Of a DNA stretch of 64,000 bases, positions 15,918 through 63,011 are shown in pieces. The DNA is taken from positions 124,001 to 188,000 of IMG/VR virus record IMGVR_UViG_3300046694_000296, one strand, 5' to 3'. The position numbers were made by a program, and so were the translations under genes. Numbering within the stretch: the first letter of the stretch is position 1; each line of letters starts with the position of its first letter. Under the pieces are notes generated by a model. That model did no database searches and had not been told where the DNA came from. It was given only the letters and a program-made list of their open reading frames with translations.

Positions 15918-16409
15918 ATGGCTGAGTTCAAGGTGACGCGCCGGTTTGCAGAGCATCGAGGTGGCACGAAGGCGTATCAGATTTTCGAAGTGCAGTGCGA
16001 AACGAACGTCGCCATCGTTCTCCAATACGGCAAGTTCAGCACCGGCTCGGACCCCGTGTCGATGGGTGGCTCAGTCAGCATCGAGGGCGTCTATGGGCAA
16101 CGGCAGGCGCGGGGCGTCGCCGATCGCAAGCAGACCGAGAAGATGCGACGTGGCTATGACGGATGGACCGAAGACACGTTCACGGCCGCCGACGAAGCCT
16201 CGTTCAAGGACGTGCTCAAGAAGCTGTGGGGCGACCGTAAGGCCGAGCAGGTTTTCGCTCGCGTCTCAAAGGGCATGGTGACTGCCTCGACCGACCCGCA
16301 ACCATCCGAACCCCCGCCAGAAGTCGATCCCGAAAATGATGATGAGGGCGACACGAAAGCGCCCGTAATCGAAATCGAACAATCCTCGCCCGAATGGGGC
16401 AGCTGGTAG
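15918..16409 (+). CDS. WGR-like domain protein with C-terminal GSW tag
   Basis: KAYQI...QYGK...EKMRRGY resembles the WGR domain; acidic tail ending SPEWGSW. Confidence 0.6.
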   Translation: MAEFKVTRRFAEHRGGTKAYQIFEVQCETNVAIVLQYGKFSTGSDPVSMGGSVSIEGVYGQRQARGVADRKQTEKMRRGYDGWTEDTFTAADEASFKDVLKKLWGDRKAEQVFARVSKGMVTASTDPQPSEPPPEVDPENDDEGDTKAPVIEIEQSSPEWGSW

Positions 16410-16418
16410 GAGAGAGCA

Positions 16419-17057
16419 ATGACCACCGAAGTAGCGAATCCGATTTTGCCGCCGTCCGTGTCTGCCGATGCGAAGCGCAACGCCTTCTACACGAAGTGCC
16501 CGGAGCAGCAGTCGACCAAGCCGTATGCGATGTGCCAATACATCGCGGCGAATCAGAGTGACGCCTCGCTCAAGACGCTCTACGCCGATTGCATGGCGGC
16601 GATTCACCGCGGCCGCTGCGTCGCGGTCGATATGAAGGCGGAGGAGCAGCTGAAGGGCCAAGCGATCTACTTCATCGAGCGCGTGAAGGGCGCCGCAGTG
16701 GTTGCTGCGCAAACCGCCTGGACATCGCCGCTCACGCTGAAGGCGAACCGTGCGCGTCGCGAGTATGCCGCGCCGGTCGCGGCCCCGGCGCCCGCACCCA
16801 AGAAGCCCGTATTCGAGTTCGACGGCAACATCTACGCCGCCGCGCTCAACGCCGCTGTGAAGAAGGAATCGAATGCAACTAACGATCCTGCTCCGCAGCC
16901 GAAGGTGACGCCCGTCGCTGTTGCGCCGGTCGCACCGACCCCGGCCGTCAAGCCGGTAGCCGCACCGACCATTCAAGTAAACCTCACGCGCCGCGCAGGG
17001 GAGTCGCCGCTCGACTTCGCCCGGCGGCTGCGCGCATCACAGGGAGCACAGGCATGA
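16419..17057 (+). CDS. Hypothetical protein (Cys-containing N-domain, Pro/Ala-rich C-part)
   Basis: RBS GGAG; four spaced Cys. Confidence 0.7.
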   Translation: MTTEVANPILPPSVSADAKRNAFYTKCPEQQSTKPYAMCQYIAANQSDASLKTLYADCMAAIHRGRCVAVDMKAEEQLKGQAIYFIERVKGAAVVAAQTAWTSPLTLKANRARREYAAPVAAPAPAPKKPVFEFDGNIYAAALNAAVKKESNATNDPAPQPKVTPVAVAPVAPTPAVKPVAAPTIQVNLTRRAGESPLDFARRLRASQGAQA

Positions 17058-17356
17058 CCAAGACCTACAAGCCGTTCAAGCTGCTGGAGACAGGCGAGAA
17101 GTTCATCGACCTCGACACCGGCGTGCTCTGCATGAAGATCGGCGGCATCGACAACCAAGGTAACGCGATGCACCTGTCGGCCGGCTACGACATCTTCCAT
17201 CGCACGAAGATCGGTGCAGTCGCACTGCAGCCGTTCAAGGCACACGGCCGCGATTATCCGGTCGGCGCGGTGCTCGCATTCGATGAAAAAGAAGCCGTTG
17301 AAATCCCGCCTTTCCTGGATTTCAAGGCGGTCGAACAACTTCAAACACAAGGGTAA
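17054..17356 (+). CDS. Hypothetical protein
   Basis: ATGA overlap, GGAG RBS. Confidence 0.7.
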   Translation: MTKTYKPFKLLETGEKFIDLDTGVLCMKIGGIDNQGNAMHLSAGYDIFHRTKIGAVALQPFKAHGRDYPVGAVLAFDEKEAVEIPPFLDFKAVEQLQTQG

Positions 17357-17363
17357 GTAACAC

Positions 17364-18773
17364 ATGACTTCCGCCGTAATGACCAGCTGCCAGGCGTTCA
17401 ACGTGATCGAGAAAATCGCCGCGACCTCCAGCAAGAACGACAAGCAGGCGATGGTGAAGCAGTTCCTCGCCTTCGACACCTTCAAGCGCGTGCTCGTCGC
17501 CGCACTCGACCCACTCGTGACCTACGGCATGCAGCAAGTGCCCGATCGCCTACCCAACACAGCACCGGGCGCCAACACCTTCGAGAACGCTGGAATCTGG
17601 GAGACGCTCGACCAGCTGCGGCTGCGCAATCTCACCGGCAACGCCGCGCGCGACGAAGTGCAGCGCTTGATGACCTTCCTCACGCCCGAGTCGGCCGAGC
17701 TCTTCAAGCGGATCTTGCGCAAGGATCTGCGCGCGGGCTTCTCCGAATCGACCGTCAACAAGGCATGGAAGGGGCTCATCCGCGAGTTCCCCTACATGCG
17801 CTGCGCGCTCCTGAAGGACGCGAAGCTCGACACGTGGACGTGGGAAGCGGGCGTGATCTCGCAGGAGAAGGCCGACGGCATGTTCATGAACATCGACCAC
17901 GAGGAGGGCGGGGTGGTGCGCATGACGAGCCGACAGGGCACGCCGTTTGATGTCGAGACGTTCGGCGTCTTCGCCGACCATGTGCGTGCGATGTTCCCTG
18001 CCGGCACGCAGACGCACGGCGAAATGCTCGTGGTGGTCAACGGCGAAATCGCCCCGCGCGAAATCAGCAACGGTATCCTGAACCGCGTGGCGGCGGGCGG
18101 CCAGTTCTCGCATGCCGAGACACCGCGGTTCTTCGCGTGGGATCAAATCCCGCTGGCCGTGGTCGCGCCGAAGGGCAAATACGAAGTCGGGTATCGCGAG
18201 CGTCTGAAGGCGATGGTCAAAGGCATGACGAACGGCCCGCGTGCACTCGGCATCCAGAGCGCGATGATTCAGGTCATTCCGACGAAGGTGGTCAAGTCGC
18301 TGGAAGAGGCGATGACTCACTATCGCGATCTGCTGGCCCAAGGCAAGGAAGGCACGATCATCAAGAACGGGGCCGCGACGTGGAAGGACGGCACGAGCAA
18401 GGAGCAGATCAAGCTCAAGCTCGAGGTGGACGTCGATTTGAAGGTGATCGCCATTGCGCCGGGCCGTGTGGGCACGAAGAACGAAGGCCGCGCTGGCGCT
18501 TTCACCTGCGAGACGTCCGAGGGCGGGCTGCGCGTCGATGTGACGGTGAAGAACGAGGCGCTACGCGATGAGGTCGATGCCAACCCCGAGAAGTTCATCG
18601 GTGGGATCATTGCAGTGCGCGCGAACGCGGTGATGAAGCCGAGCGAGAGCAACGACCGGCATAGCCTGTTTTTGCCGCGCATGGTCGAAGCAGGGCTTCG
18701 CCTCGACAAGAGCGAGCCGGATACGCTCACGCAAGTCATCGCGCAGTTCGACGCGGCAGTGAAGGGGGCATAA
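17364..18773 (+). CDS. lig: ATP-dependent DNA ligase
   Basis: EKADG adenylation motif, HGEM, EGTIIK, KLK and SLFLPR motifs. Confidence 0.92.
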   Translation: MTSAVMTSCQAFNVIEKIAATSSKNDKQAMVKQFLAFDTFKRVLVAALDPLVTYGMQQVPDRLPNTAPGANTFENAGIWETLDQLRLRNLTGNAARDEVQRLMTFLTPESAELFKRILRKDLRAGFSESTVNKAWKGLIREFPYMRCALLKDAKLDTWTWEAGVISQEKADGMFMNIDHEEGGVVRMTSRQGTPFDVETFGVFADHVRAMFPAGTQTHGEMLVVVNGEIAPREISNGILNRVAAGGQFSHAETPRFFAWDQIPLAVVAPKGKYEVGYRERLKAMVKGMTNGPRALGIQSAMIQVIPTKVVKSLEEAMTHYRDLLAQGKEGTIIKNGAATWKDGTSKEQIKLKLEVDVDLKVIAIAPGRVGTKNEGRAGAFTCETSEGGLRVDVTVKNEALRDEVDANPEKFIGGIIAVRANAVMKPSESNDRHSLFLPRMVEAGLRLDKSEPDTLTQVIAQFDAAVKGA

Positions 18774-21112: not shown

Positions 21113-22087
21113 CTAGAACGATTTGGTCACACGCGGCACGCTTGTCAGGCTCGGCGACAGGAGCAGTCCCGATTGCGTCGCCTCGACCCTAGCGTGCGGA
21201 TAGACCTCAAGCACCTGCCCGAGAGAGCGCTTGAGCACCTCGCGGAATTTGCGATGCCGCTCGGCCTCGCTGCCGAACTGCAGGCGCAACACCTCCCACG
21301 GCACGGTCGTCGGCCGACGCAGCGCGAACATGCGATAGGTCAGCCAGCAATACAGGTCGATCGACATAGGCGACTGCCGCAGCGCGCGCAAGGCCCGCAG
21401 ATCGACCGGCACCGGATGCTGCGTGACCTCATTGAAGAACCGGGATGAGAGCGTGACCGTGCTTTGCCATAGGCCCGCTTGATCGGGCCGCTGCTTTGAC
21501 CACCACAGGTTCATCTCGTCGGCGACCGTGAACTTGCCGCTGCCGAAGTCCTGCCCTGCTCCGCTCGTGATGATCGCCATGTCGGCCGCGAAAAGACGCT
21601 TCATCATCTCGCGCAGCCGCGTGATCGAGCCGTTCTTGCCACCGGAGTGCGAGGTGACGCCGATGGAGTTCATGAACTCGGAGAGCGTGTCGCCCAGCAC
21701 GATGCGAGGCTCCTTCGTGCGAACGGCCTCCGTCGACAACCACGCCAGCAGCAGGCGCGGGATCGTCCCATAGGGATAGCCCATGCTGCGCGCCTTGGTA
21801 GGATCGTGCGGGTGTTCGGGGTCCGCTTCGTAGCCCGGCTTGATGATGAGCATAGCCTCGCCCATCCCGCGGCCCCAGAACGGTAGTGCCCGGTCGGGCT
21901 CGCGATATGGCAGCGTCGCCTGCACCAACGCCCGGCCGAGAAAGCCAGCCATGCCAGCGGCGACCGCATCTTCCTGGTCAATCGCCTGAGCCTCTTCGAG
22001 CAGGCGCGCGGTGACGTTGCCATGCGGCACACCGCCCTTGCGCTTATTCTTCTCCCGCTCGACCAGATCACCCACGACGCCCTCCAC
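21113..22087 (-). CDS. repA: Plasmid replication initiator RepA (RepA_C family)
   Basis: LVQATLPY, GYPYGTIPRLLLAWL, PVPVDL and DLYCWL motifs; flanked by iterons; true start may be GTG 22075. Confidence 0.88.
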   Translation of the reverse strand: MEGVVGDLVEREKNKRKGGVPHGNVTARLLEEAQAIDQEDAVAAGMAGFLGRALVQATLPYREPDRALPFWGRGMGEAMLIIKPGYEADPEHPHDPTKARSMGYPYGTIPRLLLAWLSTEAVRTKEPRIVLGDTLSEFMNSIGVTSHSGGKNGSITRLREMMKRLFAADMAIITSGAGQDFGSGKFTVADEMNLWWSKQRPDQAGLWQSTVTLSSRFFNEVTQHPVPVDLRALRALRQSPMSIDLYCWLTYRMFALRRPTTVPWEVLRLQFGSEAERHRKFREVLKRSLGQVLEVYPHARVEATQSGLLLSPSLTSVPRVTKSF

Positions 22088-22508: not shown

Positions 22509-22883
22509 TCAGTCCATCCCGAGGCGCTTCTTCTCACGTGCGACCGCAACGCGCAGCGCTTCGGCGATGAAGTCGTTCTTGGTCTGCCCAGTGGCAAAGC
22601 AGATCAGGTTCAAATCCTCTTTGAGCGCGGGCGGGATACGCACTGGCTGCTGCACGGGTGCCTCTTTTTTCGGGCGCATCGCGCGCAGGGCTGACAGGTC
22701 AAGCTTGGTGCCGTGCGCCCTACTCTCCTCGGCGGCCGGCGCTGGCGCCTGTGCTTCTGGCGGCGCGATCGGTCGCACATTGTCAGCGGGCGGTGCCGTG
22801 GTCACCGCAGCCACCTCGCTCTTCAGTGCGCCCAGAATGGCGCTACGGCCCTTCGGCGCGCTCATCACGTCGTCTTTGCTCAT
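22509..22883 (-). CDS. Partition partner protein (ParG/RHH-like centromere binding)
   Basis: Overlaps the parA stop; flexible N-terminus and C-terminal PVRIPPALKEDL..KNDFIAEAL ribbon-helix-helix pattern. Confidence 0.7.
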   Translation of the reverse strand: MSKDDVMSAPKGRSAILGALKSEVAAVTTAPPADNVRPIAPPEAQAPAPAAEESRAHGTKLDLSALRAMRPKKEAPVQQPVRIPPALKEDLNLICFATGQTKNDFIAEALRVAVAREKKRLGMD

Positions 22884-23551
22884 GATCCGAATGCTCCCAG
22901 ATAGGTGTCTTTCATCTCGTTCGCGGCAGCGGCATCCCACCACTCGCCGGTCAGCTCGGTGACGCCCTTGCCTTGCGCCAAGGCGAACTTGTAGCTCTCG
23001 CGCGAGGCGATCAGATGCTTCATGAGGGGTAGCCGATCCTTGAACGCCTCCATCTGCTTGAGCATGGATTTGGTCATGCGCTTGCGCTTGTCGGCCTGAT
23101 TGAGCACGACCCGCACGTCAATCTTCTTGGTGTATGTGCCGAGAAGCTCGTGGAGATCAGGCACGGTGTCGAGATCCGCCGGCGACGGGATGAGCGGCGC
23201 GATGACCTTCTCTGCCACTGCCAGCCCGTAGCGAAACCCGTCCGAGTCCTTGCCGCCGACGTCGATGAACACGTCGTCATACTCGTCGACCAGGCGGCCA
23301 AGAATGTCAGCGAACTCCTCTTCCGTCAGGCGCTTCTCTCGCGGCCAACGCTCAACGTGGACCTGGGACAACTCGGGATGCTCCGCGCGGCGCAAGGCCC
23401 ACTTTGTCGTGGTGCCCTGCCCGTCCAGATCGAATACCGCGACACGTCGGTCGAGAGATGCGCGGATAACGACCAAGTTTTGCGTAATGGTTGATTTGCC
23501 GACACCACCCTTCTCTGTTCCCACCATAAATACGTCCTTGATTACGGACAT
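22880..23551 (-). CDS. parA: ParA family partition ATPase (type Ib)
   Basis: KGGVGKST deviant Walker A, DLDGQ and IDVGG motifs. Confidence 0.92.
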   Translation of the reverse strand: MSVIKDVFMVGTEKGGVGKSTITQNLVVIRASLDRRVAVFDLDGQGTTTKWALRRAEHPELSQVHVERWPREKRLTEEEFADILGRLVDEYDDVFIDVGGKDSDGFRYGLAVAEKVIAPLIPSPADLDTVPDLHELLGTYTKKIDVRVVLNQADKRKRMTKSMLKQMEAFKDRLPLMKHLIASRESYKFALAQGKGVTELTGEWWDAAAANEMKDTYLGAFGS

Positions 23552-24862: not shown

Positions 24863-27202
24863 ATGAAAGTTAACAACCGCGTCCTGGTCATGCGTGAGGC
24901 AATCACGAAGATCGTGCCGATGTTAACTCAACGCTCGGTGAAGGTAACGCAGCAAGGCACGCAAGCGTTCGTCGAGTATCACGGGACGACGCTGGAAGTT
25001 AAGCGCGTGAACCTGCCGTATATCCCCGAAGACGCCAGCGACCAGCTGCTCGACGCGACGCAGGGCTTCCTCGACCACGAGGTCGGCCACGTTCTGTTCA
25101 CGGAGCAGAAGTTCGTCAAGAAGGCCGCGAAGCTCCAGGTGCACTCGCTGCACAACATGATCGAGGACACCTTCGTCGAGCGGAAGATGGGCGAGAAATT
25201 CCCCGGTTGCGGATCGAACCTGACCCGCATGCACGGTTTCTTCCTGACCGAGTGGATCGACACGCAGCTCAAGGAGAAGCCCGAGCATGCCGCCGCGATT
25301 CTGATGGTCTGCGCGATTCGTGCATGGGCGGGCCAGCCCGCCTTCGTCGGCTACATGAAAGACAAGTGGTCGATGATGGAAGACGTCGTGAACCGGCTCG
25401 GTGCCGACTTCCCGAAGATGATCCGGGGCGTCAACAGCAGCGAAGCGGGCCTGAAGGTCGCGATCGAAGCGAAGAAGCGTCTCACGCCGAAGCCGCAACC
25501 GAAAGCACCGACGCCGCCGACGCCTCCGCAGCCGGCACCGCCCGAGCCGCCGAAAGCTGAAGAGCCGCAGCCGTCCGACGACGAGAACGCGAAGAACGGC
25601 GCGGAGCAAAGCAGCGGCGAGTCGCACGATGACGCCGACGACAAAGAGCCGCAGCAACCGAACGATATGCCCAACCTCACCGACGAGGAGCCCGAGCAGA
25701 GCGCATCCAGCGCCCCGCAGCCGGAGGGTGACGACGAGGACGAGGACGAGCTCGACGACGCTGAAGGTGAGGAAGATCGGGAGCCGGAAGGTGAGCCCGA
25801 ACAGGAGCAGCCCGCACCTGCGCCGGGCGACGAAGAGGACGACGACGCAGAGGATACCGAGAGCCCGCTGGACGTCAACGAGCCGGACGACGACCTCGAC
25901 GACGAGGACGAGGACACCAGCACCGAGCAGGACGACGAGGGTGACAACGCGGGCGGTGGCATGTCGGGCGAAGAGGCCGACAACGACCATGACGTCGGCG
26001 ACGAAGAGGGCGCACCGAGCGGTGGCGGCGACGGTCTGCCCGGTGGCGAAGAGTCGGGCGACACCGCCGAGAGCGATGCGGGCGACGCGGGCGGCCAGGA
26101 CGAGAACGGAGCGGGCCAGCAAGACGCGGGCGACGAAGAGGGGCACGGCACGCCCGAAGCAGGCGAGGGCGATCAGCCGATCGAGCGCGATCCGAACGAC
26201 GATCGCGACTTCTTCAAGGAGTTCGAAGACGCTGACGTGAAGGAGTTCGACGAGGCGGCCGCCGAAGCACTCTCGAAACAAGCGGTCGAGGCTGCGCGCG
26301 GTGCGGACTACATCGTGTTCACCCGCGACGAGGACGTCCTCGAAGTGCTGGACGTGCCCGATGCGTTCGGGCAGGAGGAAGTCACCCGAATGCAGAGCAA
26401 GGTGGACCACATGATCGGGCCGCTGCAGAAAGATTTGCAGCGCGCTATCGCGGCGCGTTCTGCAGCAATCTGGACGGGCGGGCACCGGCGCGGCCAGCTG
26501 CACGGCGCATCACTCGCCCGCGTGCTCACCGGCCGCGACGACGTGTTCAGGCAGAAGCAGGTGTCCCGCACGAAGGACGTCGCGGTGTCGCTCCTCGTCG
26601 ATGCGTCCGGCTCGATGTGGGAGCACGACAAGATTCGCGTCGCCACTTATGCCGCGTATGCGCTCTCGGCGGTGCTCGACAACATCGGCATCACCAACGA
26701 GGTGCTCGCCTTCAGCACGAAGGAGCTGAGCTTCCCGGCAATGTCGGCGATGCACAAAGAGGCAAGCGAGCACGGCCTCAAATACTCGCGGGGCGCCGCG
26801 CTCGATATGCGCATCCTGAAGTCCTACGCCGAGCGCATGACGCCGCTCGTGCGCCGACGCTTCGCGTTGCTCGCGGGTGCTAACGCAATGCTGCAAGAGA
26901 ACGTCGATGGCGAGAGCGTGCAGATCGCGAATCACCGTCTCCAGCAGCAGCGCGCGACGCGCAAGGTGATGATGGTGCTCTCGGATGGGATGCCTGCGTG
27001 CGATGGGCGTCGCAGCCCGGTCCTCGCGTCGCACCTGAAAGAGGTAGTGCGACAGATCGAAAAGCGCGGCACCGACGTCGTAGCGCTCGGCATTCTCGAC
27101 CCTTCGGTGAAACAGTTCTACGACCGCGCGCTGGTCCTCAATTCGGTGGCAGAGCTGCCCGGCGTCGTGATGAAGGAGCTGCACCGACTCCTCGTGCAGT
27201 GA
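24863..27202 (+). CDS. CobT-like VWA-domain protein with a long acidic linker
   Basis: N-terminal DHEVGH metallopeptidase-like motif; C-terminal MIDAS DASGSM...SDGMP; adjacent to a CobS-like ATPase. Confidence 0.85.
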   Translation: MKVNNRVLVMREAITKIVPMLTQRSVKVTQQGTQAFVEYHGTTLEVKRVNLPYIPEDASDQLLDATQGFLDHEVGHVLFTEQKFVKKAAKLQVHSLHNMIEDTFVERKMGEKFPGCGSNLTRMHGFFLTEWIDTQLKEKPEHAAAILMVCAIRAWAGQPAFVGYMKDKWSMMEDVVNRLGADFPKMIRGVNSSEAGLKVAIEAKKRLTPKPQPKAPTPPTPPQPAPPEPPKAEEPQPSDDENAKNGAEQSSGESHDDADDKEPQQPNDMPNLTDEEPEQSASSAPQPEGDDEDEDELDDAEGEEDREPEGEPEQEQPAPAPGDEEDDDAEDTESPLDVNEPDDDLDDEDEDTSTEQDDEGDNAGGGMSGEEADNDHDVGDEEGAPSGGGDGLPGGEESGDTAESDAGDAGGQDENGAGQQDAGDEEGHGTPEAGEGDQPIERDPNDDRDFFKEFEDADVKEFDEAAAEALSKQAVEAARGADYIVFTRDEDVLEVLDVPDAFGQEEVTRMQSKVDHMIGPLQKDLQRAIAARSAAIWTGGHRRGQLHGASLARVLTGRDDVFRQKQVSRTKDVAVSLLVDASGSMWEHDKIRVATYAAYALSAVLDNIGITNEVLAFSTKELSFPAMSAMHKEASEHGLKYSRGAALDMRILKSYAERMTPLVRRRFALLAGANAMLQENVDGESVQIANHRLQQQRATRKVMMVLSDGMPACDGRRSPVLASHLKEVVRQIEKRGTDVVALGILDPSVKQFYDRALVLNSVAELPGVVMKELHRLLVQ

Positions 27203-27339: not shown

Positions 27340-28551
27340 ATGAGCGATACCGGCGACAAGATCACTTGCCAGGAGTGCGGCGCGCTAACCCACGCGATTC
27401 AGCTCCACCTGCCGGATGCCCACCCGGGCATGACTCTCGCCGACTATCAGGCGAAATACCCCGAAGCACCGATCCTCTCCAAGCGCGCTCAAGCTGAACT
27501 CGAACGCCAGCGCGCAGCAAAAGCTGCCGCAGCTGCACCCGTGACCGCCGCGATGGCGGGCGGTGCTGTGCCCGCTAATGTGATCGCGCTGAACCCCGAA
27601 GGCAAGACGACCGCCACGCTGCACGACACGTTCGGCTTGCTCGACGGTCACGGTAAGCCGGTGCCCGCAGCGCTCAATTCGCGCAAGGGTCCGATCGAAA
27701 TCACCGTGTTCGCCTCGCCGCGTGACGCCGATATGGTGCCGGCGATCGACCCCGGCTTCATCTTCGATATCGAAAACCTGCGCAACGCGATCATGGCGCT
27801 CGAACTCCGCAAGAACCTCTACGTGTGGGGTCACGCCGGAACGGGCAAGACGACGCTCATCGAACAGATCATGGCGCGCACCGGGCGGCCGGTGATTCGC
27901 GTGCAGCACTCGATCGGCACCGAAGAGTCGCACGTCCTCGGTCAGTGGGTGGTGCGCGGCGGTCAGACCGAGTTTCAACCGGGCCTGCTCCCGCTCGCGA
28001 TGCGCAACGGCTGGACCTACCTCGCCGACGAATACGACTTCGGTAACCCCGCGGTCCTCGCCGTGTATCAACCGATCCTCGAACCGGGCAAGAGCCTCGT
28101 CATCAAGGACGCACCCGACGAGTGGCGTGTGGTGAAACCGCACGAGAACTTCCGCTTCGTCGCAACGGGCAACACGAACGGTTCCGGTGACGACACGGGC
28201 CTCTATCAAGGCACGCAGATTCAGAACGCCGCGAACTATGACCGTTTCGGCATGGTGCTCGAGGCGACCTACATGCAGCCGGAGCTCGAGTCGGCGATTC
28301 TGGTGCAGCGCAGCCGGATTCAGAAGAAGAACGCCGATCAGCTGGTGGACTTCGCGAACCGCGTGCGCGAAGCCTATAAGAACAAGGAGATCGCGAGCAC
28401 CATCTCGCCGCGATGCCTGATCGACGCGGCCGACATCGGTCTGCGACGCGCGAACTGGCGCTTGGGCGTGACGCTCTCCTTCATCAACAAGCTCTCTGCG
28501 GTGGACCGCGCTGTCGTTGACGGCGTTGCATCGCGAATTCTCGACAAGTAA
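27340..28551 (+). CDS. CobS-like MoxR AAA+ ATPase with an N-terminal C2H2-like finger
   Basis: GHAGTGKT, LADEYD, ATGNTNG and DRF motifs; N-terminal CQEC...H...H. Confidence 0.88.
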   Translation: MSDTGDKITCQECGALTHAIQLHLPDAHPGMTLADYQAKYPEAPILSKRAQAELERQRAAKAAAAAPVTAAMAGGAVPANVIALNPEGKTTATLHDTFGLLDGHGKPVPAALNSRKGPIEITVFASPRDADMVPAIDPGFIFDIENLRNAIMALELRKNLYVWGHAGTGKTTLIEQIMARTGRPVIRVQHSIGTEESHVLGQWVVRGGQTEFQPGLLPLAMRNGWTYLADEYDFGNPAVLAVYQPILEPGKSLVIKDAPDEWRVVKPHENFRFVATGNTNGSGDDTGLYQGTQIQNAANYDRFGMVLEATYMQPELESAILVQRSRIQKKNADQLVDFANRVREAYKNKEIASTISPRCLIDAADIGLRRANWRLGVTLSFINKLSAVDRAVVDGVASRILDK

Positions 28552-41443: not shown

Positions 41444-43405
41444 ATGGAGATTCTTAAACTACGAGCGGTCAACTTCCTGACGCTCGGTGACTCGGGCGAC
41501 CTGCTGCTCAAGGACCGCGGTTTGGTCCTGATTCAAGGCGTCAACAACGACGACCCGTCCGCGATCTCGAACGGTGCGGGCAAGAGCTCCATCGCCGACG
41601 CGCTGTGCTGGGCGCTTTACGGCACCACCGCACGCGAAGAGTCGGGCGATTCCGTCATCAACAAGAAGGCGAAGAAGGGCACCTACGTGTCGGTGATCCT
41701 GCAAGACGGCGAGACGGTTTACGACATTCGCCGCCACCGCAAGGACAAGCAGTTCAAGAACGCGACCACGATCACGCGCTGGAACCCGGCCGCCGAGTAT
41801 GAGAACGGTGCGCAGGGCGAGCGCATCGAGAAGGGCACCGAGAAGGAGATCCAGCTGCAGATCAATGAGATCGTCGGCTGCAACTACGACGTGTTCAAGT
41901 CGGCCATCTACGCCGGCCAGGAGGATATGCCCGACCTGCCGAAGATGACCGACAAGCCGCTCAAGATGCTCATCGAGAAGGCGTCGGGCATCGAACGACT
42001 GGAGTCGGCCTACACGATTGCGAACCGTAAGCACGACGAGGCAAAGGCGGCGGTCGAATCGGTCAACACGAAGATCGCGCTGCTGGAGAACCAGATCGTC
42101 AACTGGAAAGTGTCGCTCGCGAACGCCGAGGTCAAGCACAAGGAGTTCGAGGACAACCGCCCGGTCACGCAGCAATACTTCCTGAAGGAAGCTGAGACGA
42201 TCGCCGCGTGTCTGAAAGACAACTTCGCGAAGTTCCAGGCGGTCGGCGAGGCTGCACTGATCGAGGAGCGCGACAAGCTGCAAGCGATCCTCGCAGATCA
42301 CAGCAAGTTCACGACCGAAGCACGCGCGCTGCATGGCGTCGCGGTGCAGGCCGAATCAAGCCTCGCTGCGTGGAACCGCAGCTATGAAATGCAGCGGGCC
42401 GACATGTTGCGCGCGGTGGAAGCCGTGAAGAATGCCCCCGCAGCGATGGCGAAGCCCTGCACCGAATGTGGCAAGCCGCATACCGCCGAAGAGCTGGACG
42501 AGTTCGTCGCACACCAGACCAAGCGCGCGAAGGAGTTGGCAGCGCAGGTAGCGACGGTTCAGGCGACGGTGACCGAGCATCAGAACGACCACGCCGCGAA
42601 GCTGCGCGCGTATGAGGATTTCCTGAAGACGATTCCCGACGTGTCGGCTACGAGCACGCGGCTCGCCGAGGTCAACAAGAGCCTCGCCTACGCGGCCGCC
42701 CTGCGCAGCGCCGTGCAGCGCGACAAGCAGAACTACGACCGCATGAAGGAAGAGGCGGCGAAGGCGCTCACGACCGTCAACCCGCACCAGTCCGCGATCG
42801 ACTTGGGCCGGGAGAACGTGGGCAAGTGCGAGCAGGCGATCGACAAGCTCAAGGCTGACGCGGCCGAGCTCATCAAGGCGGTCGAAGTCGCGGCGAGCGT
42901 CGCGAAGGTGTTCAGCCCCGGTGGCGTGCGTGCGCAGATCCTCGATACGGTCACGCCGTTCCTGAACGATCGCACCAGCGACTACCTGTCGGCGCTCTCC
43001 GACGGGAACATCAGCGCCGTGTGGTCGACACTGAGCACGACCGCGAAGGGCGAGCTCCGCGAGAAATTCAACATCGAGGTCGAGAACGCCACCGGTGCTG
43101 AGTCGTTCGGTGGTCTGTCGGGCGGGGAAAAGCGCAAGGTCAGGCTCGCGACGATGCTCGCGCTGCAAGACTTGGTGGCCTCCCGCGCGACCAAGCCGAT
43201 CAACCTGTGGCTCGGCGACGAGATTGACGATGCGCTCGACGCAGCGGGCCTCGAACGGCTCATGACCGTGCTGGAGCAGAAGGCGCGCGAGAAGGGAACC
43301 GTGCTGATTATCAGCCACGAAAGCCTCGCCGATTGGGTGGATCAGGTCTGCACCGTCACGAAGGAAGGCGGGCAATCGACCGTGACCGGAGCGCTCTGCG
43401 CATGA
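41444..43405 (+). CDS. SbcC/Rad50-like ATPase
   Basis: NGAGKS, CTEC zinc hook, LSGGE signature, DE and ISH motifs. Confidence 0.92.
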   Translation: MEILKLRAVNFLTLGDSGDLLLKDRGLVLIQGVNNDDPSAISNGAGKSSIADALCWALYGTTAREESGDSVINKKAKKGTYVSVILQDGETVYDIRRHRKDKQFKNATTITRWNPAAEYENGAQGERIEKGTEKEIQLQINEIVGCNYDVFKSAIYAGQEDMPDLPKMTDKPLKMLIEKASGIERLESAYTIANRKHDEAKAAVESVNTKIALLENQIVNWKVSLANAEVKHKEFEDNRPVTQQYFLKEAETIAACLKDNFAKFQAVGEAALIEERDKLQAILADHSKFTTEARALHGVAVQAESSLAAWNRSYEMQRADMLRAVEAVKNAPAAMAKPCTECGKPHTAEELDEFVAHQTKRAKELAAQVATVQATVTEHQNDHAAKLRAYEDFLKTIPDVSATSTRLAEVNKSLAYAAALRSAVQRDKQNYDRMKEEAAKALTTVNPHQSAIDLGRENVGKCEQAIDKLKADAAELIKAVEVAASVAKVFSPGGVRAQILDTVTPFLNDRTSDYLSALSDGNISAVWSTLSTTAKGELREKFNIEVENATGAESFGGLSGGEKRKVRLATMLALQDLVASRATKPINLWLGDEIDDALDAAGLERLMTVLEQKAREKGTVLIISHESLADWVDQVCTVTKEGGQSTVTGALCA

Positions 43406-43920
43406 GCGCGCGAAACAAGAAGTCCAGCGTGCTCGACGACCTTGTGGCGAGCGCCACCCAGTTCACACGATATGAGGAGAATCGAAGCATGACACTCGAT
43501 GCCAAGCAGAAGGCAGCAGACGAGATAGCCGCACGCATTAACAGCGGGCTGCGCGGACACGGACGCACGTCGTTCAAGCTCACCGGCCCGGCGCAACTGA
43601 CCATCAAGACGCGCCAGTCGCAATACAAGAAGAAGGCATTCTTGGGCGACGAGGAGATGGCGCTCACCAGCGCATACGCGGGCAAGCGCGGCGACGTGAT
43701 CGCGGTGTTCAAGAACAACGTGCCGACCGAATACGCCTACATCGAAATTCCGCTGATGGAAGCGCGCGAGCGACTGAGTGGCTTTTCAGATTTCATTGCG
43801 GCGCTCAACATCGAGGACTTCGACAAGATCGTCGATGGCATCGAGCAGGGTATCGCGCAGGCAGCCGCCGTCGAGCGCGAAGAGGCAATGGCAGAATCCC
43901 CCGAGTTTGGTAGCTGGTAA
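43402..43920 (+). CDS. Hypothetical protein with C-terminal GSW tag
   Basis: Ends ESPEFGSW; alternative start 43489 with GAGGAG RBS. Confidence 0.7.
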   Translation: MSARNKKSSVLDDLVASATQFTRYEENRSMTLDAKQKAADEIAARINSGLRGHGRTSFKLTGPAQLTIKTRQSQYKKKAFLGDEEMALTSAYAGKRGDVIAVFKNNVPTEYAYIEIPLMEARERLSGFSDFIAALNIEDFDKIVDGIEQGIAQAAAVEREEAMAESPEFGSW

Positions 43921-46939: not shown

Positions 46940-46946
46940 GTCACCT

Positions 46947-47207
46947 ATGAGCAATGTCATCGACCTCGGCGCCCGACGCGCCGCCAAGCAAGCGCCCGCA
47001 CCTGTTGTCGAAGAAGCGCCGCTGCCGGCCGCCATGCAACAGGCGATCGAGCAGAACTTCGCGCAGATCGGATTTGCGCACTCGCTCGTCGGCCAGGCGC
47101 TTCACTTCTACGCCAATCAGGGCTTCGATCATGGTCAGCACGCACGCGTTGCGCTCGCGGCGATGAACGGCGCTCTCGAACTCGTTCCCGGAGAAACACA
47201 AGCATGA
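46947..47207 (+). CDS. Hypothetical protein
   Basis: MSNVIDL..RR start; ATGA overlap with nrdB. Confidence 0.65.
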   Translation: MSNVIDLGARRAAKQAPAPVVEEAPLPAAMQQAIEQNFAQIGFAHSLVGQALHFYANQGFDHGQHARVALAAMNGALELVPGETQA

Positions 47208-51167: not shown

Positions 51168-51794
51168 ATGACCACTCAGAACGTCAAGCTGACGAATCAC
51201 GCCCGCGACCAGATCATCCAGAACGCCCTGCACGGCGCGTTTGAAAAGGAGCGCAAGGCGAACAAGGCTCGTCTGACCAAGCTCGCCGACAAGTGCTATC
51301 GCTCGACGGTCAGCGTTGCGACCGAGAAGGCTGCCCGCCAGGCGCCCGACGACTTCCTGTATCTGTGCAACGTGATCTCGCGCATCTACTTCCGCGATGC
51401 GGAGCTGCGTCGGAACATGGACACGGCCTACGATGTGGAGCTCTCGCGTGCCGTCCCGTTCCCGGGCCGTCATACCACGCTGACCATCGAGTCCAAAGAG
51501 CTGCATGCCGAGTATGTGGAGATCATGCGAGTGGAGCGCGAGCTGGACCAGAAGCACAACGACCTCGCGGAAAGCCTCAAGCGCACGGTCTACAGCACGT
51601 CCTCGCTCAAGAAGCTGATAGAGATGTGGCCGGAGGTCGAGAACTTCCTGCCCGCCTCCGTCACCGCACCGAAGCCCATGCTTCCGGCGCTGCCCGTCGG
51701 CGATCTGAACAATGCGCTGCGCGCCGCCGGGGTCAAGGTCGGTGTCATCGTCACGCCGAAAGCAACCGGCGGCCTTGTAGCGGTGGCAGCATGA
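51168..51794 (+). CDS. Nmad5-like protein (nucleotide modification associated domain)
   Basis: KLT...RD.I...A N-terminus and S.KKL.E.WPE...LP C-terminal motif. Confidence 0.6.
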   Translation: MTTQNVKLTNHARDQIIQNALHGAFEKERKANKARLTKLADKCYRSTVSVATEKAARQAPDDFLYLCNVISRIYFRDAELRRNMDTAYDVELSRAVPFPGRHTTLTIESKELHAEYVEIMRVERELDQKHNDLAESLKRTVYSTSSLKKLIEMWPEVENFLPASVTAPKPMLPALPVGDLNNALRAAGVKVGVIVTPKATGGLVAVAA

Positions 51795-55281: not shown

Positions 55282-55863
55282 ATGACCCGAATCGCGGGCC
55301 TTGACCTAGAAACCACGGGCCTTGACCAGTCGGCCGGACATCGGATCATCGAAGTCGCGGTGACGCTCCACGAGCTCGAAACCGAGCGCTTCCTGGGCAA
55401 ATACGTCCAGCGTATCAACCCGCAGCGTGCCATCGACCCCGATGCGCAGCGCGTGCACGGGATCACCTTCGAGCAGCTGGCGCACGAGCCGACGTGGGAA
55501 CAGGTCGCGCCGAACGTCCACCGCGTGCTCTCTGCGGTGCGCTACATGGCCGGGCACAACATCATCGGCTTCGACTGGCCGTTCCTCTCAGGCGAGTTCA
55601 AGCGCATCGGCATGGCGGTCCCCGAGCTGGAGCTCATCGACACGATGGTGGACGCCCGCTGGGCGACGCCGCTGGGCAAGCTCCCGAATCTCTCGGAGCT
55701 CTGTTTTGCCACCGGTATCGAGTATGACCCGAGCCAAGCACACGGCGCCCTATACGACATCGACGTAAACATGAATGCGTATTTCGCCGCGCGTCGCATG
55801 GGCTTCTTCGGCCCGCAAATCGTTCAACCCGTTCCCGCAATCGTGGAGGAAGCAACAGCATGA
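55282..55863 (+). CDS. DnaQ-like DEDDh 3'-5' exonuclease
   Basis: DLETTG, HRIIE, GHN..FD, IDT and H.ALYD motifs. Confidence 0.9.
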   Translation: MTRIAGLDLETTGLDQSAGHRIIEVAVTLHELETERFLGKYVQRINPQRAIDPDAQRVHGITFEQLAHEPTWEQVAPNVHRVLSAVRYMAGHNIIGFDWPFLSGEFKRIGMAVPELELIDTMVDARWATPLGKLPNLSELCFATGIEYDPSQAHGALYDIDVNMNAYFAARRMGFFGPQIVQPVPAIVEEATA

Positions 55864-56075: not shown

Positions 56076-56650
56076 GCCGCATCAAAGTCATCGTGAAGGG
56101 CCAGTCCGGCAGCGGTCACCACCGCACCGCAGAGGCGATCTTCGCCATGCTCGACAGCAAGGGCGCAAACATTCGCGTGGACAGCGGCGACGCCGTGCTG
56201 CGCACCGGTTACGCCACTATGTTCAATGCCAGGGGCCTGCGCGTGAAGTTGAAGGTCGTGCAAGAGCCGCGCGAGGAGGTGCCTGTGCGCGCGGCCGACG
56301 AGCCATGCAGGTGCAAGACGCTGGGCGACTGGAATGGCAATCATCACCCCTTGTGCGACGGCGAGGTGATGATGGCGGTGAACGAGGAAGAGGCTCGCTA
56401 CATTCTGACCCGCCGCGGGCAGAAGATGACCCACTACAGCGTGCATCAGGACAAGGAAGGCCGGTTCTACTACTGGTCGTGGGGCCGACAGCCGGCGGGC
56501 GAACTGCTCAACCAGATCGCCGACATCAACCCGGTGATCGCGGCGAAGAAGTTCCTCACGATCTACCTGCCGTGCGATCCGGCGAGTTGGGGCAGCTGCA
56601 TCCAGCCCAAGCGCAAGGATGGACAGCCGATCGTGGGCGAGACATGCTAG
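56072..56650 (+). CDS. Hypothetical protein
   Basis: Coupled ORF with good codon usage. Confidence 0.6.
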   Translation: MSRIKVIVKGQSGSGHHRTAEAIFAMLDSKGANIRVDSGDAVLRTGYATMFNARGLRVKLKVVQEPREEVPVRAADEPCRCKTLGDWNGNHHPLCDGEVMMAVNEEEARYILTRRGQKMTHYSVHQDKEGRFYYWSWGRQPAGELLNQIADINPVIAAKKFLTIYLPCDPASWGSCIQPKRKDGQPIVGETC

Positions 56651-57354
56651 TCAGCGTGTTCGCCGACGCATCATTCGACCCTAACACGCGTGCCGGCGGC
56701 TTCGGCTGCTGGATGAAGTCTCAGCGCGGCGGCCACTCAGCGGGCGGGCCGTTCAAGTCCCGGGCGCGCAATAGCGGCATCGCCGAAATGATGGCGTGCC
56801 TGAATGCGGCGCACCTTGCGTTCGTGCATCAGGTTGCCTTCCCGGGCGACGAGCTCCTCATCCAGACCGATTGCCAGGCCGCGATCCTTGCATTCGAGGG
56901 CAAGCGGGCTCTGCAAGAGGACGAGAAGATCATCGCGGATGGCATGGCGACCATCGCGCAGATCAAGCAAGCGCGCATTCGTTTCCGCCACGTCAAGGGG
57001 CACACGAAGGGCGATCAGCCTCGCTTGTGGGTGAATAATCATTGCGACGCACTCGCAAAGCAGGGCAGACGCGAAGCGCTTGCCCTGCACAAAACGCAGT
57101 CCTTGCCGAACCTGATCGAGGTGCCAGCGCGCCGCGTCAAGAGCGAGGACGAGCGTTCGCAAAAGCGCGCTGCGCGAAAGCACGCTAGGATGGCGGATCA
57201 AAATAACCGCCGTGCATTCGCTTTCGGCTTTAATAACAAGGAGAATCATTCGCATGTGGGCACCGGCGTTTCACCAATACCGCTTCGGCAAGAACAAGAG
57301 CTGGCTCAACAGCCTGTGGCTGGGCACGATCTGGGCGTTTCTCACGCTGCCTGA
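56644..57354 (+). CDS. Ribonuclease HI-like protein
   Basis: FADAS, AEMMA, TDC, HVKGH and N..CDALA motifs. Confidence 0.85.
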   Translation: MLVSVFADASFDPNTRAGGFGCWMKSQRGGHSAGGPFKSRARNSGIAEMMACLNAAHLAFVHQVAFPGDELLIQTDCQAAILAFEGKRALQEDEKIIADGMATIAQIKQARIRFRHVKGHTKGDQPRLWVNNHCDALAKQGRREALALHKTQSLPNLIEVPARRVKSEDERSQKRAARKHARMADQNNRRAFAFGFNNKENHSHVGTGVSPIPLRQEQELAQQPVAGHDLGVSHAA

Positions 57355-61745: not shown

Positions 61746-61748
61746 ACC

Positions 61749-62234
61749 ATGAGCAAGGACAAGACCGCCTACGTGAGCCGCGAAGGGCATCGACTCCAGA
61801 GGGTCGAGTGGCAACGCCTGCGTGCCGACAACGCCTACCGCACGGTTCGGGCGTTCGAGAACGACACGATTGGCGTGACCGCCGAGTGGGTGGGTATCGG
61901 CCAGAATCCGCAGACCGTGCCGCCCCAGCACTGGAAGCTCTACCGCCTGACGGTCGAGAACATCGTGCGCGCCGACGCAGAAGGGAATCCGCTGCCGGTG
62001 CCGCGCCGCACGGTCGATCCAAGCCTCACGCGCGACTTTCGCACCGAGCAGGAAGCGATCGACGCCTACGAAGACGCACTGGTGCGTTTCGGTGGTTGTG
62101 AGTGGTTGCCCGCGCCCGACGGCGCGACTGGCCCGCTCTTTGTCGAGCACGGCAACAAGTTGCAGGTGGGCGAAAGCAAGATCGACGTGCGCGAGCTGGC
62201 CGATGACGTCGCGGACCTCGCCGGGAGCTGGTGA
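61749..62234 (+). CDS. Hypothetical protein with C-terminal GSW tag
   Basis: Ends DVADLAGSW. Confidence 0.75.
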   Translation: MSKDKTAYVSREGHRLQRVEWQRLRADNAYRTVRAFENDTIGVTAEWVGIGQNPQTVPPQHWKLYRLTVENIVRADAEGNPLPVPRRTVDPSLTRDFRTEQEAIDAYEDALVRFGGCEWLPAPDGATGPLFVEHGNKLQVGESKIDVRELADDVADLAGSW

Positions 62235-62482
62235 TGACGGAATGCGATGAAGTCGCCGAAGGGATGCGCGACGATTTTCTCGGCTGGATTCGCGCCGAAG
62301 AGCGCGAGTTGTCGCACTACGCGGCGCGCAGATTCGTGACCGCGCAGATGCCCGACGAGACACCGACGATCCGCGATGACGTGTCCTTGAGCCTCTTCGC
62401 CATCGCGCGGGTGCATGTGCACGACCACACGATGCGCCAGAAGATCGCTGAGATGGACAGTCCGATGGCCGGGAGTTGGTGA
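62234..62482 (+). CDS. GSW-tag paralog 1
   Basis: TGATG coupling; ends DSPMAGSW. Confidence 0.75.
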   Translation: MTECDEVAEGMRDDFLGWIRAEERELSHYAARRFVTAQMPDETPTIRDDVSLSLFAIARVHVHDHTMRQKIAEMDSPMAGSW

Positions 62483-62742
62483 TGGCACGGGATCGCAGCG
62501 GGGAAGCCCGGCGGTGGGTGCCGTCGTTCGCACAGTGGCTCGTCGAGAACAAGATGGAGCTCGATGGGTATGCCGCCTACATCTATGCGCGCAAGGTCGT
62601 CGTGCCGGATAGCGGCCGTCAATACCAGAAAGAGATCGGCGTGGCACTGCTCAAGCTGGCGCAGCAGGAATACGAAGTCGAGGCTCAGAAGCGAGAGCGC
62701 GACGAGGAGATGGCGAGCAACCCATTGGCCGGGAGTTGGTGA
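62482..62742 (+). CDS. GSW-tag paralog 2
   Basis: TGATG coupling; ends SNPLAGSW. Confidence 0.75.
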   Translation: MARDRSGEARRWVPSFAQWLVENKMELDGYAAYIYARKVVVPDSGRQYQKEIGVALLKLAQQEYEVEAQKRERDEEMASNPLAGSW

Positions 62743-63011
62743 TGGCAGAAGCCTCAAGAATCACTGCCGCGAACATGCTTCATGATTTCATGCGCTGGCT
62801 CGCGAAGGAAGGCTATGTGGTGGACGCCCTCGCGGCGCGCGAGTTCGTTGCCAAGCGACTACCGCACCAGTCCATCGACTATCGCATGAGCGTCGTCCAC
62901 AAGCTGCTCGAACTGGCGGAACGGGAAGCGAAGAAGGCGCGCGAGCAGCACGAGGCATCGCCGCCTCAAGATGAAGATTCAGCCGGCAGCCCATTGGCGG
63001 GTAGCTGGTAA
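62742..63011 (+). CDS. GSW-tag paralog 3
   Basis: TGATG coupling; ends GSPLAGSW. Confidence 0.75.
   Translation: MAEASRITAANMLHDFMRWLAKEGYVVDALAAREFVAKRLPHQSIDYRMSVVHKLLELAEREAKKAREQHEASPPQDEDSAGSPLAGSW

Follow-up and report, generated by a model that had tools for sequence, protein, structure and literature searches.

In the window (the whole stretch of 64,000 nt analysed here), six proteins of an SSU5-like phage-plasmid, which form four unrelated sequence types, end in the same few residues (P-x-Φ/A-G-S-W in this element, with Pro in five of six), and the same kind of tail marks 3-9% of called genes in five related genomes. We therefore regard it as a conserved C-terminal short linear motif and, most likely, as a docking tag that would tether variable client proteins to one partner, although no receptor was identified. 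Our literature searches found no description of this motif.

The C-terminal tail in the window

A previous sequence-only reading had reported six ORFs ending in Gly-Ser-Trp-stop and had considered this number very unlikely by chance. We found this observation to be correct: all six ORFs exist on the + strand, and the tails, the codons and the stops are as described (Table 1). No other ORF of at least 30 aa, in any frame, ends in GSW. Our gene call gave 85-86 genes, rather than the about 95 proteins assumed before, and GSW occurs twice among 18,957 internal tripeptides and six times at 85 C-termini, where about 0.0045 terminal cases are expected from composition. The Poisson P is 1e-17 for six cases, or 2e-11 if only the four independent families are counted. 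As for the carriers, BLASTP showed that only the three small proteins are paralogues, at about 29% identity, whereas the other three share nothing but the tail.

Table 1. Tail-bearing genes, overlapping Shine-Dalgarno sequences and other genes of the window referred to in the text.
Position	Strand	Feature	Tail (encoded at)	Gly, Ser codons	Stop	Remarks
15918..16409	+	WGR-like protein, 163 aa, directly after the DnaG primase gene	SSPEWGSW (16383-16406)	GGC, AGC	TAG	WGR evidence weak or indirect
43402..43920	+	Protein of unknown fold, 172 aa, between SbcC and RuvC	ESPEFGSW (43894-43917)	GGT, AGC	TAA	No PDB fold match
61749..62234	+	161-aa protein	VADLAGSW (62208-62231)	GGG, AGC	TGA	Stop overlaps the next ATG
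62234..62482	+	Small paralogue 1, 82 aa	DSPMAGSW (62456-62479)	GGG, AGT	TGA	
62482..62742	+	Small paralogue 2, 86 aa	SNPLAGSW (62716-62739)	GGG, AGT	TGA	
62742..63011	+	Small paralogue 3, 89 aa	GSPLAGSW (62985-63008)	GGT, AGC	TAA	No + strand gene follows
62223..62227	+	GGGAG, dual-coded Shine-Dalgarno sequence inside the Gly-Ser codons of the 61749-62234 tail				6 nt upstream of the overlapping ATG at 62234
62471..62475	+	GGGAG inside the Gly-Ser codons of the 62234-62482 tail				6 nt upstream of the ATG at 62482
62731..62735	+	GGGAG inside the Gly-Ser codons of the 62482-62742 tail				6 nt upstream of the ATG at 62742
34587-35576		gp32-like SSB				Pfam gp32 E=2.8e-15; ends PELDALLAGL
21113-22075	-	RepA				RepA_C E=3e-31
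22880-23551	-	ParA/MipZ				E=1e-12 to 5e-13

The description of the first carrier as WGR-like is only partly supported. A Pfam search gave no hit on the window protein at E up to 1 (PF05406); however, a relative (P0151) carries a precomputed Pfam WGR hit, the positional equivalent in Rhizobium phage RHEph10 (the gene after primase, gp034) is annotated as WGR, and the family consensus contains HWG...G...KRGY. The AlphaFold model is confident (pLDDT 86), in particular over residues 1-120, and its best Foldseek hits are WGR-containing chains of PARP2 and PARP1, but at a non-significant E=0.16 and a TM of about 0.3. In this model, residues 121-163 are coil with pLDDT 53-68. Similarly, in the model of the post-SbcC protein the pLDDT is below 50 for residues 153-172. 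AlphaFold places the tails in low-confidence coil, not packed on their own domain.

Conservation and dialects in related genomes

The element is an SSU5-like phage-plasmid of the SSU5/Nickievirus group. Homologs of its replication-recombination module (PhoH, DnaB, DnaG, ligase, CobT, CobS, DnaE, gp32-like SSB, 5'-3' exonuclease, RecA, SbcCD, RuvC, NrdAB, DnaQ) lie in the same order in a Cupriavidus phage-plasmid, nickie, SSU5, BUCTxx99 and RHEph10, and it carries the plasmid maintenance genes repA and parA/mipZ.

Enrichment in relatives and retention of the tail in diverging orthologs had been set beforehand as tests of the motif. The tail was enriched in all five genomes tested (4-13 of 85-156 called genes) and was seen on three proteins of a sixth. 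Comparing C-termini with the internal rate of the same 4-mer, we obtained P=1.6e-6 for the window, 9e-13 for nickie, 2e-14 for BUCTxx99, 9e-6 for the Cupriavidus plasmid and 4e-4 for SSU5. By contrast, no tails were found in the controls, namely Vibrio phage ICP2 (0/64) and a 41-kb region of the T4-like phage pf16 (0/55). About 46 carriers, including WGR-like and BRCT proteins (the latter with Pfam E=3e-7), form at least 40 unrelated BLAST clusters once the last 8 residues are removed.

In the WGR-like family, 143 of 150 representatives, at most 50% identical to each other, end [WFY]-[GA]-x-[WFY]; in detail, 133/150 have W at -3, 130/150 have G at -2, 123/150 have S/T at -1 and 133/150 have W at 0. 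Moreover, W160 and W163 are among 13 invariant or nearly invariant columns of a 148-sequence alignment, whose members are mostly 19-30% identical to the window protein. All 20 relatives of the post-SbcC protein, down to 39% identity, end P-[EA]-F-[GA]-S-W, and a homolog in RHEph10 ends NPNFGRF. Twelve of 13 members of the small family end [AV]-G-[ST]-W, and the 161-aa protein is 29% identical to nickie gp065, the gene after dnaQ, which ends DAGGWS. Positional equivalents in SSU5 (WATW), nickie (FGGWA, AGGWS), the Cupriavidus plasmid (FGSW, WGSW) and RHEph10 (FGMF, FGRF) keep a tail, while the bodies of orthologs have diverged to 20-40% identity or beyond recognition. The client set is, however, fluid, since in BUCTxx99 the two proteins at the core positions (after primase and after SbcC) lack the tail, while about 10-13 other proteins have it.

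The motif runs through the group with lineage-specific dialects (ΦGSW, YGxW, ΦGGW[AS], WATW and FG[RM]F) and it is broader than the GSW reported at first: Φ-[GA]-x-[WF], optionally followed by Ala or Ser. Trp need not be the last residue, because in nickie one extra Ala or Ser follows it, and a strict free-carboxylate-on-Trp reading does not hold everywhere; in RHEph10, Trp is replaced by Phe.

The variety of codons had been taken to indicate selection on the peptide rather than on the DNA. This is supported: across 39 tails, we counted for Gly GGC 8, GGT 9, GGG 12 and GGA 8, for Ser AGY 10 and TCN 3, and all three stops occur. A caveat is needed, since in the three overlapping junctions of the window GGG-AGY is also the Shine-Dalgarno sequence of the next gene. 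The same architecture occurs in nickie (GGAGG-N6-ATG within GGWA-stop), where six or seven tails are GGRGG-N-TGG-NN-ATGA with the same spacing, and the DNA around the WGR-family stop is unusually conserved, including third codon positions. On the other hand, tails occur with overlapping, spaced or absent downstream genes: three of the six window tails, and at least ten tails in relatives, have no overlapping downstream start or no downstream gene. In addition, none of 20 ATGA junctions in the window and 29 of 35 in nickie lack the tail, and in the post-SbcC family synonymous variation is seen with a constant peptide.

A proposed docking tag and its alternatives

The sequence-only reading had inferred a short linear motif that docks a set of phage proteins on one receptor, for which the CobS/CobT chaperone, a capsid component, or a host hub protein or protease were suggested. 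This interpretation is partly supported by our data. The analysis established the motif, its enrichment, its conservation as a peptide, its presence on unrelated proteins and its position after a predicted coil, whereas docking, the existence of a single receptor for all carriers and the identity of that receptor are inferences. CobS/CobT is present, with an intact MIDAS motif, but it is not sufficient, because ICP2 has both CobT and CobS and no such tails. HslV, RNR-beta mimicry and the canonical clamp motif do not fit either.

We propose, with moderate confidence, that the tail, with consensus [S/N]-P-x(1-2)-Φ-[G/A]-x-[W/F]-COOH at the end of a flexible, often acidic, linker, works as a tether. 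In this view, the two aromatic or hydrophobic side chains, spaced by a Gly-containing turn, would insert into a hydrophobic pocket of one common partner, and this would concentrate a changeable set of clients there. The clients include DNA nick-, end- or break-related modules (a WGR-like protein next to primase and ligase, a protein between SbcC and RuvC, a protein next to the DnaQ exonuclease, a BRCT protein and a protein annotated as Gam-like in relatives) and many small accessory proteins in tandem arrays. Since the tail is uniform within a genome but differs between lineages, we think that the partner is more likely a phage-encoded core protein than a universally conserved host hub; candidates are the gp32-like SSB, DnaB/DnaG/DnaE, RecA, the ligase and the CobT VWA domain. 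However, every tail-bearing genome examined belongs to one phage group, so that phyletic patterns cannot separate the replication, CobS/CobT and structural modules as receptor sources, and a degron or a packaging signal would produce the same sequence signature.

The first alternative, which we consider unlikely, is in fact a C-terminal degron, read by a host or phage protease or unfoldase, which would give all carriers a short or regulated half-life, for example to time early functions or to silence them in the plasmid state. The architecture matches, being a disordered end with a hydrophobic or aromatic C-terminus on many small early-region proteins; bacterial AAA+ proteases read short C-terminal tags, such as ssrA and the MuA C-terminus for ClpX, and the element encodes an AAA+ MoxR ATPase with a VWA partner. 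Nevertheless, the motif is not known to match any ClpX, Lon or FtsH tag class, the HslV-like peptidase is present only in nickie, and the tail is near-universal on a core replication-module protein across about 150 diverged clusters, which fits a constitutive functional contact better than instability.

Slightly less likely is a capsid-targeting or packaging signal, loading DNA-end-binding and small accessory proteins into the procapsid for co-injection. The phyletic pattern is compatible, since the structural module is shared by the same phage group that has the tails, and several clients look like DNA-end or nick binders (WGR-like; BRCT; Gam-like by depositor annotation), which would be useful on injected DNA. 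Encapsulin cargo peptides contain G-S-L, which is a lead only. By contrast, no annotated structural protein in the complete Cupriavidus plasmid, nickie or BUCTxx99 genomes, or in the 95 kb of SSU5 read, carries a convincing tail, the only hit among them, the BUCTxx99 tail protein ending RIGIW, looking like a chance match. Moreover, carriers lie in replication and early-type operons, the DnaB-DnaG-WGR-DUF8312-ligase block is conserved, and we found no virion proteomics data.

It is also doubtful that the tail binds a non-protein ligand, such as single-stranded or damaged DNA through aromatic stacking, or a membrane, or that it mediates self-association of each carrier rather than docking on a shared protein receptor. 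Two aromatic residues three positions apart and the DNA-related domains of several carriers could suggest this, but a four-residue element is too short to give specificity alone, the dialects (GSW, YGxW, GGW[AS], WATW, FGRF) suggest co-evolution with a changeable partner rather than with DNA or lipid, and AlphaFold does not dock the tail on its own domain. Finally, that the peptide is a by-product of a nucleotide signal at gene ends, a translational-coupling cassette formed by Gly-Ser or Gly-Gly codons (GGGAG, GGAGG), TGG, and a stop overlapping the next start, is largely refuted as the sole cause by the junction and codon data above, and a ribosome-binding site does not explain the aromatic residue at -3, the Pro or the Trp/Phe.

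Comparison with known systems

Encapsulin cargo-loading peptides and the C-terminal capsid-targeting tail of the HK97 protease are C-terminal peptides that direct unrelated cargo proteins to an HK97-fold shell. Here, instead, carriers are in replication and early modules, no scaffold or protease carries the tail, and no packaging evidence exists.

The Ku-binding motifs of eukaryotic end-joining factors are short tethers on accessory DNA-repair proteins; APLF-type motifs have a basic patch followed by a conserved Pro and Trp, while XLF-type motifs have a conserved Phe and are typically C-terminal (PMC4831024). Pro and Trp/Phe are present in our tails, and nickie tails often read [RK]-P-x-x-F-G-x-[WF]-[AS], but the window tails are preceded by acidic, not basic, residues. 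The Ku80 partner domain is vWA-like; the element has no Ku80 homolog, but it encodes a VWA protein (CobT, with DASGS at residue 580), and some clients are WGR-like or BRCT proteins, or annotated as Gam-like. The resemblance is conceptual.

The bacterial sliding-clamp-binding motif (QL[SD]LF) and the C-terminal clamp-binding tails of T4 gp43, gp33 and gp55 are short motifs, often at the extreme C-terminus, shared by unrelated DNA-metabolism proteins so that they bind one hub, and phage proteins use the motif, as in MuC with two near-consensus motifs (PMC12867686). The consensus is not matched by our tails: the position five from the end is E, D, N, L or M in the window and in relatives, with Gln occasional only; position 4, Leu/Met in the clamp motif, is S or T in 123/150 WGR-family tails and G, D, R or E elsewhere; and position 5, Phe/Leu in the clamp motif, is W in 133/150. 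Furthermore, no clamp gene was recognised in the element, and the phage DnaE shows no conserved Q-x-x-[LM]-F.

In the SSB C-terminal tail (SSB-Ct, ...DDDIPF), a flexible, acidic linker ends in a hydrophobic or aromatic residue that docks in partner pockets. The topology is reversed, because in SSB one hub carries the tail and many clients carry pockets, whereas here many clients carry the tail; the carriers are not SSBs, and the gp32-like SSB of the element ends in a different acidic/Leu-rich tail (Table 1). The T7 gp2.5 and gp4 acidic C-terminal tails end in Phe and both dock on gp5-thioredoxin; T7 has only two clients, and its tails are strongly acidic, without the P-x-Φ-G-x-W pattern and without homology to those described here, but in both cases unrelated phage proteins share a C-terminal aromatic tail, in T7 for the same receptor.

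The tagged proteins and the element that encodes them

The window (62% G+C) yielded 85-86 genes with a simple codon-usage caller, nearly all on the + strand. Six of these genes end in Gly-Ser-Trp-stop at exactly the positions claimed by the sequence-only reading, with the codons and stops it had listed and with Pro sixth from the end in five of six, and its observation was therefore confirmed. GSW occurs twice among 18,957 internal tripeptides but at 6 of 85 C-termini, where 0.0045 are expected; the Poisson P is 1e-17, or 2e-11 if only the four independent families are counted. BLASTP showed that only the three small proteins are paralogues, at about 29% identity, whereas the other three share only the tail. 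To assign the carriers to a family or a fold, they were searched against Pfam and PHROGs, which gave nothing for any of the six window proteins and nothing useful for most relatives; Foldseek against the PDB gave no significant hit for either of the two AlphaFold models.

The source contig, IMGVR_UViG_3300046694_000296 (215,656 bp), of which the window covers bases 124001-188000, carries two diverged copies of an element of roughly 105 kb: for example, the post-SbcC gene occurs in both, at 69% and 100% identity. This could be a co-integrate, a tandem of two related phage-plasmids or an assembly chimera. The window is syntenic with a 107-kb Cupriavidus metallidurans phage-plasmid, Pseudomonas phage nickie, Salmonella phage SSU5, Stenotrophomonas phage BUCTxx99 and Rhizobium phage RHEph10. 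The genes that could be placed by homology or Pfam are collected in the table below, together with the other features discussed here. The RepA_C replication initiator (E=3e-31) and the ParA/MipZ ATPase confirm that the element is maintained as a plasmid as well as being a siphovirus relative.

Coordinates of the features (window positions unless another sequence is named; L-numbers are the labels of the stretches of related genomes on which the positions are counted)
Sequence	Coordinates	Strand	Feature
Window	10901-11635		PhoH
Window	11871-12518		Unknown core protein
Window	12582-13034		Hfq-like protein
Window	13061-14422		DnaB
Window	14636-15868		DnaG
Window	16419-17057		Gene after the WGR-like gene; DUF8312 in a relative, phrog_4558
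Window	17379-18773		ATP-dependent ligase
Window	21113-22075	-	RepA
Window	22880-23551	-	ParA/MipZ
Window	24863-27202		CobT, with a VWA domain and DASGS at residue 580
Window	27340-28551		CobS (MoxR type)
Window	28643-29215		190-aa protein after CobS
Window	29861-33205		DnaE
Window	33763-34419		Conserved unknown protein between DnaE and SSB; UvsY-like (lead only)
Window	34587-35576		gp32-like SSB, ending PELDALLAGL
nickie, L024	9553-10392		gp32-like SSB, ending LDELDDLLED
BUCTxx99, L030	28621-29457		gp32-like SSB, ending DDIDDFLGEL
RHEph10, L029	29715-30656		gp32-like SSB, ending DDVLADLDSI
Window	35645-36586		5'-3' exonuclease
Window	36850-37899		RecA
Window	37953-38309		Unknown core protein
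Window	40376-43405		SbcD and SbcC
Window	43933-44499		RuvC
Window	44633-48196		NrdA and NrdB
Window	47204-48196		NrdB (RNR small subunit)
Window	48834-49706		ThyX
Window	51168-51794		Nmad5 nucleotide-modification domain protein
Window	55282-55863		DnaQ-type exonuclease
Window	56644-57354		RNase H domain protein
Window	61749-62234		Tail-bearing protein, homolog of nickie gp065
Window	62234, 62482, 62742		Overlapping junctions with GGGAG in the Gly-Ser codons
Contig	49870-70367		Post-SbcC gene, 69% identity
Contig	157402-177917		Post-SbcC gene, 100% identity
BUCTxx99 genome (L031 22783-25646)	26983-29846	-	Tandem array of small genes

Some of the neighbouring genes gave hints of function. The Hfq-like protein, encoded just upstream of DnaB, gave a Pfam Hfq hit at E=0.004, below the cut-off, and its Cupriavidus homolog (38% identity) is annotated as Hfq. 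The 190-aa protein after CobS gave a weak Sigma70 region 2 hit (E=0.003, below the Pfam cut-off), and the gene at the same position after CobS in RHEph10 is annotated as a sigma factor; it may be a small T4 gp55-like late sigma. The conserved unknown protein between DnaE and SSB has ESM Atlas look-alikes that include clusters with the UvsY family (score 0.92), and may be a recombination mediator alongside the gp32-like SSB and RecA. The Nmad5 match (E=5e-24) hints at DNA base modification in this element, while the RNase H domain was matched at E=5e-10. The nickie homolog of the DUF8312-type protein is Cys-rich, and the block DnaB-DnaG-WGR-like-DUF8312-ligase is kept in every relative inspected. 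Finally, the gp32-like SSB has its own, different, conserved C-terminal tail, acidic with Leu/Ile/Phe residues, so that the element appears to run two separate tail systems.

Conservation of the tail as a peptide and its dialects

To evaluate whether the tail is maintained as a peptide, we compared the families of the carriers. Twenty homologs of the post-SbcC protein, down to 39% identity, all end P-[EA]-F-[GA]-S-W, with F169, S171 and W172 invariant, while their Pro, Glu, Phe and Ala codons vary synonymously; one row, from a plasmid record, was left out of the input for structure prediction. A homolog in the alphaproteobacterial phage RHEph10 ends NPNFGRF, whereas tblastn of the post-SbcC protein against the plasmid and phage collections found nothing. 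Two scans of species-representative genomes found no relatives. For the WGR-like family, a profile search of 1.84 billion representatives gave 156 hits; of the best 150, which are at most 50% identical to each other, 143 end [WFY]-[GA]-x-[WFY], with W at -3 in 133, G at -2 in 130, S or T at -1 in 123 and W at the end in 133. In a 148-sequence alignment, whose members are mostly 19-30% identical to the window protein, the two tail Trp residues are among 13 invariant or nearly invariant columns. The two tail-less members of this family could not be used, since one lies on a 594-bp contig and the other is not on record. In the small family, 12 of 13 members keep [AV]-G-[ST]-W. The protein at 61749-62234 is 29% identical to nickie gp065, which ends DAGGWS. 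Across 39 tails in five genomes, Gly uses GGC, GGT, GGG and GGA 8, 9, 12 and 8 times, Ser uses AGY 10 times and TCN 3 times, and all three stops occur.

The motif runs through the whole group, with dialects that differ between lineages, and the working consensus is [S/N]-P-x(1-2)-Φ-[G/A]-x-[W/F], optionally followed by Ala or Ser, at the C-terminus. The enrichment over the internal rate of the same 4-mer is significant in each genome tested (P from 4e-4 to 2e-14), and in the five genomes tested 3-9% of the called genes carry the tail. By contrast, two controls have none, namely ICP2 (0/64) and a 41-kb region of the T4-like phage pf16 (0/55). With the last eight residues removed, about 46 carriers form at least 40 unrelated BLAST clusters. 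BUCTxx99 was first considered as a tail-less relative for gene-content subtraction, but its whole genome turned out to have 10-13 tails. Most of them lie in an array of nine or ten tandem small genes, at least seven of which end Y-G-x-W; their bodies are unrelated by BLAST, one has a BRCT domain, and the array lies downstream of a 481-aa ATP-binding protein and a DEAD-box helicase.

C-terminal tails seen in the related genomes
Genome	Tails
Cupriavidus plasmid	FGSW, YGSW, FGSW, WGSW, AGCW, SGAW, WGEW
nickie	DFGGWA, DIGGWA, DAGGWS, DFGGWS, GAGSWA, AFGTWA, LMGGWA, NFGSWA, AWGTW, QYGIW, plus FGAFA, FGHFS, MGAFA
SSU5	WATW on the post-primase and post-SbcC proteins, AWDW on a third
RHEph10	FGMF (protein annotated WGR), FGRF twice
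BUCTxx99	Ten to thirteen proteins ending Y-G-x-W or close variants

AlphaFold models put the tail at the end of a low-confidence coil. In the post-SbcC protein, residues 153-172 have pLDDT below 50, and in the WGR-like protein residues 1-120 have pLDDT above 90, while 121-163 are coil at 53-68. The 25 residues before the tail are net acidic in five of the six window proteins.

Possible role of the tail and candidate partners

The most economical reading is a tethering motif for a common partner. That the motif is real, strongly selected and widely distributed on unrelated phage proteins was shown by the analysis, whereas the docking, the existence of one shared receptor and its identity are inferred. 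Docking on a common partner is the best-supported function, and we hold it with moderate confidence. The uniformity of the tail within a genome, combined with the dialects between lineages, suggests co-evolution with a changeable, probably phage-encoded, receptor. The sequence-only reading, which had proposed a motif docking a set of client proteins on one receptor, was only partly supported. Core proteins shared by all four other genomes compared with the window (Cupriavidus plasmid, nickie, SSU5, BUCTxx99) and absent from ICP2 are DnaB, DnaG, DnaE, DnaQ, the gp32-like SSB, RecA, the UvsY-like protein (an ESM Atlas lead only), SbcCD, RuvC, the 5'-3' exonuclease, the ligase, NrdAB and the unknown protein 11871-12518. 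To get more insight into whether unknown core proteins contain recognisable peptide-binding domains, 11871-12518, 16419-17057 and 37953-38309 were searched by sequence against the PDB, but nothing meaningful was returned: two had no match, and the third had only chance-level matches at E of 0.25 or higher.

The structural module is equally group-specific, so packaging cannot be excluded. There is also a complication at the nucleotide level. In the three overlapping junctions the Gly-Ser codons are GGG-AGY, which places GGGAG 6 nt upstream of the next ATG, and nickie shows the same spacing, with GGAGG inside Gly-Gly followed by TGG-GCA-TGA overlapping ATG, which may explain why nickie tails carry one extra residue. 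This cannot be the sole cause, since three window tails, and at least ten in relatives, have a separate downstream ribosome-binding site or no downstream gene, none of the window's 20 ATGA junctions has the tail, and codon usage is diverse. Rather, we read this as opportunistic dual coding, and the use of the tail codons as the next gene's ribosome-binding site is a neat example of overlapping coding constraints.

Several candidate determinants were rejected or weakened. CobS/CobT, which the sequence-only reading had listed among its candidates, is not a sufficient determinant, because ICP2 has both genes and 0/64 tails, although the pair remains a possible receptor in this group. Shared T4-like proteins (ligase, PhoH, gp32-type SSB) were considered as determinants, but the 0/55 tails of pf16 were found in a region that includes them, which is weak evidence only. 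Mimicry of the RNR beta tail that binds NrdA was examined in the window and in the NrdB homologs found in four related genomes. The window copy ends ...GTLDWD, and those of the Cupriavidus plasmid (...GTLSW) and nickie (...KGLEW) end in Trp; these Trp-rich ends presumably bind NrdA and are distinct from the client tag, and the SSU5 (...SQFADL) and BUCTxx99 (...NSLPK) ends do not co-vary with the client tails. An HslV-type peptidase as receptor, by analogy with HbYX or the HslU tail, was rejected because the gene exists only in nickie, with no homolog in the complete Cupriavidus plasmid, the window or the 95 kb of SSU5 read.

A more far-reaching possibility, which the evidence leaves standing but which we consider unlikely, is that the tail is a proteome-wide addressing code in a large group of phages and phage-plasmids. 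In this view, the lineage-tuned tag would deliver its carriers to one phage-encoded machine, which could be the enigmatic CobS/CobT MoxR-VWA pair, with the MIDAS site reading the C-terminal carboxylate, or the gp32-like SSB, and new accessory genes could be plugged into the replication/repair factory simply by acquiring a handful of residues. If the receptor were found, a functional handle would be assigned at once to many proteins of unknown function, the organising hub of a bacterial-type phage replisome apparently lacking its own clamp would be revealed, the presence of CobS/CobT in phage replication modules might be explained, and a portable tag for recruiting cargo to that hub would become available.

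Comparison with known terminal motifs

This particular motif, its spread over dozens of unrelated proteins per lineage and its near-universal conservation in a group that includes SSU5-type phage-plasmids seem not to have been described, as literature searches for such a motif found no description of it. A short terminal docking motif shared by the clients of a hub is, instead, familiar from clamp-binding, SSB-tail and Ku-binding motifs. The tail does not clearly meet the sequence definition of any of the four systems that it resembles functionally, and the canonical clamp motif was among the candidates rejected or weakened here. These systems are the clamp-binding motifs (PMC12867686), the SSB and T7 C-terminal tails, the capsid or encapsulin targeting peptides and the Ku-binding motifs, where a conserved Pro and Trp, or a C-terminal Phe, tether repair factors to a vWA-like domain (PMC4831024).
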